From Basidiobolus meristosporus CBS 931.73 (taxonomy: Eukaryota > Fungi > Basidiobolomycota): a DNA stretch of 64,000 nt. Position 1 is the first letter of the stretch. The number at the start of each line of letters is the position of its first letter. Below the pieces are notes generated by a model. It saw nothing but the letters and a program-made list of their open reading frames with translations. It did not search any database and was not told the DNA's origin. The DNA lies in assembly GCA_002104905.1 (NCBI GenBank), contig MCFE01000054.1, positions 62,001 through 126,000 on the forward strand. Direction: 5' to 3'. Below, piece after piece: positions 60,463 through 62,013 of the stretch. A program made the translations under genes and the position numbers.

Positions 60463-62013
60463 TTACGTCTGGCCTTGACCCATCATAATTTGTGCTTTCT
60501 AGAAACATCATCAAATATATTAGTTCGGACATGATTCAACTCTACGGAAGGTAAAACACGTACAAGTTGCAAGATATGCTGGCGTTGTTCCGGTGGCAGA
60601 GAGTCAATCTGCTGTGGAGTAAGATTGAGAAGCTGCATAAGAAGGACCTATGAACCGATGAGTGAATATTCGTTAGCTGCGGCTAGGGGAAAAAAGACGA
60701 AGGTGGCGTAGAGCGCATACCCTTTGCTGCTCTTGAAGATGATCACCTACACGGATATGTTGGATTAGTATGATATGTCTACAAGCGAATTGGCTATTTC
60801 TTACTCATTGCAGGATTGGCATTCCCTCCGATAGCGCCAGGAATGCCGGTAGAAGTGCTAGATGGAGGGGGAGCTTTTGACGGTACGGGTAGAGAAGTAT
60901 TGTCCGCTGGTCCAGGAAAAGCCGGCGCCACCGGAGTAGGGACGTTAGTAGCTTGTCCTGGCAACTGATTGAGTAGTCGCTAGGAAGAGATAAGTACGAC
61001 ATACAAAGAACATTATGTGGAGATCATAGAGCTACCTGTAAGACATGGTGGTCCACCAAGTTCATGGCAACCATGGCTTGGAAAATCCCATATGCCAACT
61101 GGGGGTTCTTTGTCAAGACACTTCTGGCTTGTTCTGGGCTCTGTTGTGCGAAAGACTGCATATGAATGGGATTAAGTCGAAGTAAATAGTAAAGACATGT
61201 ATCATCGCATGTCACCTTCATCTGACTCATAAGCTCTGCCAGCTGGTTGGTGTTCATGTTGGAGATTGTGTTGGAAACCGATTCGGTAGAGGGAACACTT
61301 TGTGAAGCAGATAATCTGGGCTGGTTGAAAACAAGCATGAGGGGGGTCATCTACCAAGTTGTCAACCCGAACGTCTGGAAACTTTACATCGTTACTATTA
61401 TGAAAACCGTCTCCGTCACGACCAGCCGCATTGCTGGTGGCATCGTTTTCGGTGTAATCTACACGAAGCTGACGACCGCCAACGTCATAGTTGTTAAGTA
61501 TTGAGCAAAAAAATGTTGGTAGGAAACAAGCAGTTCCTCCGTTACGCCATAACTTCCAAACACAACCGTTCATGCCCAGAGTGGTTGCTGGAGTTCTCGG
61601 TCAAACAAAGACAAACGAAGAAAGATGGAACTCATATATCAAGAAGCAAAAATAGTGGACAGAGCGATTTTGTTTGACCTATGATTTCTAACGGCGCTAC
61701 TGGCAGTCTCCGCGTCGAGGAACTCGCAGAAACCGTACCCCTTAGGTCTACCGGTCTCTCGATCAAAGACCAAACTACAAAACCAAACGTGCTTGGTTAG
61801 CCTGTGATCACCACGATAAACCAGGACGAAACTGAATCTACCGAAAGGAAACCACCGGACCAACTTCCTTGAAGATGTCGATCAACTGCTCCTCGGTTAG
61901 TTCGTATGGAATGTTCCCCACTAGATAACGGGTGAGACGAATGGAGCTTTACAAGTGCGCAAACATCTAAAGTATATACCGAACACTGCGCGAGGATTTT
62001 TCACTTGACTCAT
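60463..62013 (-). CDS. RNA15: Cleavage stimulation factor 64-kDa subunit / RNA15 homologue, 10 exons (~286-291 aa): 62013-61980, 61920-61842, 61774-61683, 61497-61373 (or 61388), 61320-61216, 61155-61036, 60979-60805, 60746-60721, 60647-60564, 60498-60463
   Basis: [50 protein letters not shown]...[18 protein letters not shown]; hinge [13 protein letters not shown]...[23 protein letters not shown]; C-terminal [23 protein letters not shown]; all phases consistent; eight GT-AG introns of about 52-73 nt plus one AT-AC intron. Confidence 0.93.
61498..61682 (-). other. Non-canonical AT-AC intron (intron 3 of RNA15), 185 nt
   Basis: AGA AAT C|ATAGGTCAAAC...TTTTTTTGCTCAATAC|TT AAC AAC restores the conserved VRNLNNYD. 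Confidence 0.75.

Follow-up and report, generated by a model that had tools for sequence, protein, structure and literature searches.

Can an intron that begins with AT and ends with AC be a genuine part of a fungal gene, and if so, which spliceosome removes it and why is it three times the length of its neighbors? These questions are raised by the third intron of the RNA15/CstF-64 gene of Basidiobolus meristosporus CBS 931.73, which lies within the 64,000-nucleotide stretch of DNA analyzed here (assembly GCA_002104905.1, contig MCFE01000054.1, positions 62,001 to 126,000) and referred to below as the window. The intron was singled out in an earlier note made from the letters of the window alone, which proposed a rare AT-AC intron of the major-spliceosome (U2) type with a possibly rate-limiting or autoregulatory splice. 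The account we favor, and consider reasonably probable as a whole, is that intron 3 is a genuine and ancient AT-AC intron of the U2 type, that it carries a conserved RNA module composed of two helices (P1 and P3) and an invariant core between them, and that its splicing is slow or regulated.

By its domains the host gene is RNA15/CstF-64. Pfam searches of the exon pieces find RRM_1 and CSTF2_hinge, and the precomputed domains of the public protein P0143 (K493DRAFT_79620 of B. meristosporus CBS 931.73; PF00076, PF14327 and PF14304) are consistent with an N-terminal RRM, a hinge domain and a C-terminal CSTF_C domain. This protein matches the window exactly through 10 exons and 9 introns, its own locus (L002) does not differ from the window over 1613 nt, and its gene model already uses the splice from 61682 to 61498. 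AT-AC junctions are not used by ab initio gene callers, and the P0143 model is for this reason probably transcript-guided. Introns 1, 2 and 4-9 are all GT-AG, with donors starting GTRNNN and lengths of 56-73 nt; intron 3 is the sole AT-AC intron of the nine and, at 185 nt, about three times as long as the rest, as the earlier note had said. It runs from ATAGGTCA at 61682 to GCTCAATAC at 61498 and ends in AATAC, with neither AG nor AC between the pyrimidine tract, including the T7 run described in that note, and the terminal AC.

The boundaries were examined by a script that enumerated every in-frame, stop-free pair of GT, GC or AT donors with AG or AC acceptors between exons 3 and 4. A single pair, 61682-61498, restores AVRN/LNNYD (a slash marks the junction here and below), and in well over 100 orthologues AVRNLN(N/G/D/E) forms an uninterrupted peptide. 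The nearest GT-AG alternative, 61678-61596, is in frame and inserts about 34 residues; the remaining alternatives (e.g. 61692-61469) remove at least 13 residues of the RRM. A boundary shifted by one base (CA..TA) yields the same mRNA and cannot be distinguished in the sequence. The earlier note had claimed that only excision of ATAGGT...CAATAC at 61498-61682 rebuilds VRN-LNNYD exactly and that GT-AG alternatives fail by insertion or deletion within the RRM; enumeration arrives at the same solution and the same failures, and boundaries, frame and the P0143 model all agree. We conclude from these comparisons that the AT-AC intron is genuine.

The same intron is present in distant relatives, at the same codon position in B. 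meristosporus, Basidiobolus ranarum, Calcarisporiella and Syncephalis. A B. ranarum paralogue (L001) has the junction ...AGAAATC/ATAGGTCT ... TTTTATAC/TTAACAAC, identical to that of the window, and the second B. ranarum paralogue can be deduced from protein model P0001, whose translated intron tail (...S-Y-Q...S-I-L-N-N-Y) fits TCCTACCAA ... ATAC/TT. The corresponding junctions are AAT T/ATAGGC ... TTATAC/TG AAC in Calcarisporiella thermophila (L003) and AAT C/ATAAGC ... GATTAC/TG AGC in Syncephalis pseudoplumigaleata (L005), so that the comparison of orthologous introns suggested in the earlier note finds AT-AC ends throughout. There is no intron at this position in Umbelopsis, Podila, Mucor or Paraglomus. 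Given this distribution of presence and absence, the intron is older than the split between Zoopagomycota and Mucoromycota, and thus hundreds of millions of years old, and it has been lost repeatedly.

The splice signals are those of the rare type II AT-AC introns, which are defined by a U2 consensus donor with A at +1 (PMC1557818) and whose known members have a strong /ATAAGT donor consensus (PMC5029451). The donor is ATARGY in all four lineages, which is the U2 consensus GTRAGT with A at +1. Compared with the U12 donor ATATCCTTT, the intron 3 donor ATAGGTCAA matches at three of nine positions, with only ATA in common, and the ATAGGC and ATAAGC donors of the relatives are likewise unlike U12 RTATCCTT. 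No branch site resembling TCCTTAAC occurs within 20 nt of the 3' end. A conserved branch-like TTCCTACC (CACCTACC in Syncephalis) is present and is followed by a U-rich tract, T7 or longer; the CCUAC of the motif departs from yUnAy at one position, and 22-27 nt (64 nt in Calcarisporiella) separate the branch-like A from the 3' end. Intron 3 shares its termini and its genome with the U12-type AT-AC introns of B. meristosporus, in which a minor spliceosome is present, but it has neither their ATATCCTT donor nor a TCCTTAAC branch site close to its 3' end, and it does have a U-tract. Termini, donor, pyrimidine tract and U2-type branch distance thus all point to type II, whereas neither the U12 donor nor a U12 branch site without a pyrimidine tract is found, and the intron is most likely removed by the major spliceosome. 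The earlier note's reading of the donor as a U2 site with G1 changed to A, and of the whole as a rare U2-type AT-AC intron, is supported at the sequence level by each of these tests of donor, branch distance and U-tract.

Table 1. Features of the RNA15/CstF-64 gene and of its intron 3, in window coordinates.
Feature	Position	Strand	Remarks
RNA15/CstF-64 gene (K493DRAFT_79620)	60463..62013	minus	10 exons, 286 aa; exact map of P0143
Exon 3	61683..61774	minus	ends ...AVRN plus first base of Leu codon; GCC GTT AGA AAT C at 61683
Intron 3	61498..61682	minus	AT-AC, 185 nt, phase 1
5' splice site ATAGGT	61677..61682	minus	relatives: ATAGGT, ATAGGC, ATAAGC
P1 5' strand (intron +4..+14)	61669..61679	minus	11 contiguous pairs with 61609..61599
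P1 3' strand	61599..61609	minus	directly abuts invariant GAGA
42-nt identical run	61563..61604	minus	same in diverged B. ranarum paralogue; longest identical run in whole gene
Invariant core	61567..61598	minus	GAGA 61598..61595, 5-nt spacer, AGC 61589..61587, CUCUGGGCAUGAACG 61581..61567
P3 5' strand GGAGGAA	61534..61540	minus	covaries with 3' strand in Syncephalis and RPS9 introns
P3 3' strand UUCCU-A-CC	61518..61525	minus	bulged A 61520 = likely branch point, 22 nt from 3' end
Pyrimidine tract	61503..61514	minus	T7 at 61513..61507
Exon 4	61388..61497	minus	starts TT AAC AAC TAT GAC at 61497

The unusual length of intron 3 is explained by a conserved RNA module that it carries. Between B. meristosporus and the B. 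ranarum paralogue identity is 36-49% in the other eight introns, the level expected at random, and 45-89% in the exons; intron 3 reaches 61% and includes an uninterrupted run of identity (Table 1). At the center of the module is a core, 32 nt long and taken to be single-stranded, with the pattern GAGA-N5/6-AGC-N10-...CUCUGGRCAYGAACG, and the same core is present in the Calcarisporiella and Syncephalis introns.

The module also occurs in a second, unrelated gene. B. meristosporus RPS9 (P0294; L039:1523-1739, MCFE01000036.1) carries it in its 217-nt intron 1, where the 15-mer CTCTGGGCATGAACG is identical to the copy in the window. A metagenome scan with the strict core pattern gave no match, and a looser pattern gave 29, about the number expected by chance; 27 of these are bacterial or otherwise unrelated and the other two are real, lying in sense orientation in intron 1 of RPS9/uS4 on two low-GC eukaryotic contigs of Glomeromycotina (L016 and L026), one of which encodes an RPS9 99% identical to that of Paraglomus brasilianum. 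One of the chance matches (L025, ~1019-1042), on a metagenome contig of low GC, falls within the coding sequence of a mariner/Tc1-like transposase with the motif WPA.SPD.N..EHLWD. RPS9 intron 1 follows a first exon of only 19-22 nt and is a GT-AG intron with an unusual conserved donor, GTATTC. The module introns of RNA15 and RPS9 are both in phase 1 and both follow ...AGRAAY Y. An alignment of the seven available cores from the two genes contains 20 invariant positions, namely GAGA, then after 5-6 nt AGC, then C.CUCUGG.CA.GAACG, and by this comparison RNA15 intron 3 and RPS9 intron 1 carry the same module.

Several public gene models at these loci are wrong because of these introns. In B. ranarum, K7432_007526 (P0002, L001:3335-3548) skips exon 4, and K7432_015887 (P0001) begins within the AT-AC intron and translates it. 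The Syncephalis model SYNPS1DRAFT_21417 (L005:553-772) is missing the end of the RRM. The RPS9 models of Paraglomus (P0258) and Rhizophagus (P0260) have wrong N-termini, the tiny first exon apparently having been missed.

Helix P1 pairs the donor region with the segment just upstream of the core. In scans of the whole intron, no other segment forms as good a duplex with the first 24 nucleotides in six of the seven introns (shuffle p values for the seven: 0.038, 0.006, 0.035, 0.128, <0.001, <0.001 and 0.030). The register is unique: in all seven the base directly 5' of GAGA pairs with position +4, and 4-11 contiguous pairs are formed. Positions +4..+7 vary among GGUC, GGCU, AGCU, UUCU and UUCA, and the partner changes to match, giving four distinct partner tetramers. 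Helix P3, with a geometry of 5 bp, a bulged A and 2 bp in six of the seven introns, encloses the branch region. It pairs GGAGGnn with nnCCU-A-CC in RNA15 and GGAAAG with CUUU-A-CC in RPS9, with compensatory changes both within RNA15 (AA/UU versus UG/CA) and between the two genes; the branch motif TTCCTACCAA is kept in three lineages and replaced by CACCTACCA in Syncephalis. Both helices covary, and the aligned introns thus appear to have a conserved structure in which the splice signals themselves participate. A hairpin within the core (GAGA with UCUC) was rejected, both strands being invariant and so offering no covariation support.

Searches for known relatives of the module gave little. Rfam, applied to the window at the gathering threshold and to the intron and related loci at relaxed E-values, returned chance-level matches only. 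A K-turn, a METTL16 site (UACAGAGAA), snoRNA boxes, tRNA-like promoter boxes and mimicry of 18S RNA were each considered by eye and showed no conserved fit. Surveys of structured fungal RNAs (PMC8216456, PMC5640933) contain no RPS9 or RNA15 motif, and we found no paper that connects CstF-64 with AT-AC introns; as far as our literature search showed, a structured module common to RNA15 and RPS9 has not been described.

The positions of the helices suggest how the module might act. With P1 formed, the donor from +4 onward would not be free for U1 or U6, and with P3 formed the branch region would not be free for U2; clamping of both the donor (+4..+7) and the branch would slow splicing or tie it to the binding of a factor at the core. 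Retention of intron 3 leads to a stop after 15 extra codons and, because a retained intron would end the reading frame this early, the module is predicted to set the output of RNA15. The idea of a regulated or rate-limiting splice, offered in the earlier note as a possibility, thus gains support from a deeply conserved predicted structure whose helices take up both the 5' splice site and the branch region. Since RPS9 and RNA15 share the module, a single regulator common to the two genes is suggested. The simplest candidate, which is a guess by analogy, is the S9/uS4 protein itself, acting on the RPS9 copies with the RNA15 copy co-regulated. In yeast, a helical junction within the intron inhibits the splicing of RPS9A, and Rps9 is found associated with that intron (PMC4856989); by the same analogy, autoregulation by the gene's own product is a candidate mechanism here.

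Besides the U12-type introns of its own genome, intron 3 can be compared with three groups of known systems. The type II AT-AC introns of vertebrate SCN4A and SCN5A resemble it in their AT-AC termini, in a U2 donor with A at +1 and in a long-conserved position. The published counts of type II AT-AC introns are 15 for human, 6 for mouse and 3 for fly; worm and Arabidopsis have none, and fungal cases have been raised only as a hypothesis (PMC1557818). RNA15 intron 3 adds to this known, rare class a fungal intron whose splice is already present in a public gene model, and it differs from the known members in that it spans two fungal phyla and sits within a conserved RNA structure. The introns of yeast ribosomal protein genes (RPS9A/B, RPL30, RPS14B, RPL22B and the zipper stem of RPL7B) also have structures that involve the splice signals, and these control splicing. 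In contrast to them, one module is found here in two unrelated genes, one of them non-ribosomal, and its conservation extends over phyla instead of being confined to Saccharomyces; the parallel with the yeast element is one of analogy only. The third comparison is with the catalytic region of U6 snRNA (the ACAGAGA box and AGC triad), which the core resembles in order, spacing and register with the donor; the module differs from U6 in lying in cis within an intron, in having no internal stem-loop and in having no covariance-model match.

Natural U2-type AT-AC introns are very rare, and one that has been kept across two phyla beside a busy minor spliceosome bears on the interconversion of intron classes. 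We nonetheless judge the structured module common to RPS9 to be more interesting than the AT-AC intron itself. RNA15 and RPS9 form a small family of structured introns whose RNA is predicted to clamp donor and branch around an invariant core, and the module is a concrete, mutable element for studies of regulated splicing outside yeast and animals. It also hints that a ribosomal protein gene and a core factor of 3'-end processing are, unexpectedly, linked in their regulation.

Six points weigh against this account. Support for the AT-AC splice at the transcript level is indirect, consisting of two JGI gene models (P0143 and P0005) that use the junction. The module is known from only seven sequences, two of them from close relatives. 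RNAalifold finds no covariation within the core in the seven-intron alignment, and for that reason the core is probably read as sequence. The P3 helices are short, and taken singly they are weak (p 0.04-0.34). The type of spliceosome is judged from motifs alone, in a fungus with an active minor spliceosome. Finally, the model does not account for a perfect U12-type donor motif inside the intron in relatives.

Of the competing explanations, the one that survives best takes the likeness to U6 literally, with the core a built-in mimic of U6 snRNA. The P1 3' strand together with GAGA-N5-AGC would repeat in cis the donor contacts of U6 (ACA/GAGA...AGC), and P3 would repeat the helix between U2 and the branch site; such a module could act as a decoy in competition with U6 and U2, or as a pre-organized helper for donors that pair poorly with the snRNAs. 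In the register of U6 A49/G50 with the donor, the base 5' of GAGA stands opposite +4, and this textbook register is the one found in all seven introns. The bulged A of P3 has its counterpart in the U2-branch duplex. The seven-intron core alignment was compared by eye with a yeast U6 fragment (PMC3177201) and with the first 69 nt of U6 (PMC3445587); across GAGA, 5 nt, AGC and 10 nt ending in CUG, 11 of 13 invariant positions match the fragment without gaps. That comparison was made with yeast U6 rather than with the U6 of the host fungus, and the match was picked after many RNAs had been weighed. Moreover, the Rfam models of U6 and U6atac give no match at E up to 10, the spacer of the core is not conserved, and the core cannot form a U6-like internal stem-loop, nor does one follow AGC. 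By covariance model and stem-loop the core does not appear to belong to the U6 family, and it is unlikely, though worth stating, that a class of introns in early-diverging fungi carries U6-like and U2-like strands in cis, by which the helices that donor and branch site enter in the active spliceosome are formed in advance or imitated. If so, these strands would be either a built-in decoy that throttles splicing or a relic or reinvention of group-II-like self-organization; such introns would tolerate odd ends, AT-AC in RNA15 and GTATTC in RPS9; and the resemblance would amount to a new kind of cis element.

Somewhat less likely still is removal by the minor, U12-dependent spliceosome in spite of the divergent donor, or a U12 intron caught in conversion, the alternative offered in the earlier note. 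We take this explanation seriously because 249 minor introns are predicted in B. meristosporus, at the highest density of any fungus (PMC10639083), and the AT-AC termini stand in the fungus known to have most of them. The first three bases of the intron are ATA, as in U12 donors, and the RPS9 donor GTATTCTT has one mismatch to the U12 consensus. A perfect RTATCCTTT (ATATCCTTT or GTATCCTTT), a suggestive feature, occurs within the P1 loop of the RNA15 introns of Calcarisporiella and Syncephalis and of the Glomeromycotina RPS9 introns (L003 ~672-680, L005 ~568-576, and L016 and L026). Against this, the donor comparison and branch-site search described above argue for the U2 type, as do the long U-tract and the distant branch-like A of Calcarisporiella, and in Basidiobolus both genes have the internal motif in degenerate form. 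Used as a donor, the motif would lengthen the Syncephalis reading frame by five codons and put that of Calcarisporiella out of frame. It may compete as a site for the minor spliceosome, or it may bind U11. Stwintron and nested-intron arrangements were also considered and rejected, since the spacing in Syncephalis is too short and Calcarisporiella would be frameshifted. Elsewhere in the window RTATCCTTT has four matches (10248, 31738, 41241 and 56933), with 1.55 expected and 6 of 100 shuffles reaching four; none is followed by a motif like TCCTTAAC, and the four matches are probably not minor introns.

The core could also be a small RNA hosted by the introns, for example a snoRNA-like guide, that has moved between hosts and has nothing to do with their splicing. 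It stands in sense orientation in two unrelated host genes, and its strong primary-sequence conservation without internal covariation is like that of guide sequences. We give this little credence: no Rfam match for a hosted small RNA was obtained, no box C/D or H/ACA pattern was seen, and P1 ties the element to the donor of its own host with host-specific covariation, which a free-standing small RNA would not need.

An artefact is highly improbable, since the AT-AC intron at one codon position, with identical AT and AC ends in four independent assemblies, excludes an assembly error and a pseudogene, the RNA15 gene is intact apart from the question of intron 3, and the 34-residue RRM insert that the in-frame GT-AG splice 61678-61596 would produce is translated intron, without protein conservation and in another frame in B. 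ranarum.

Two further features of the RNA15 locus were observed. Intron 5 (61156-61215, minus strand) is 60 nt long, stop-free and in frame, and its retention would add 20 residues to the hinge domain without truncation. In Syncephalis, Umbelopsis, Mucor and Paraglomus (L005, L006, L008 and L009) a TMEM208/SND2 gene lies convergently and immediately downstream of RNA15, and from these gene orders the arrangement is a conserved microsynteny that extends over two phyla.

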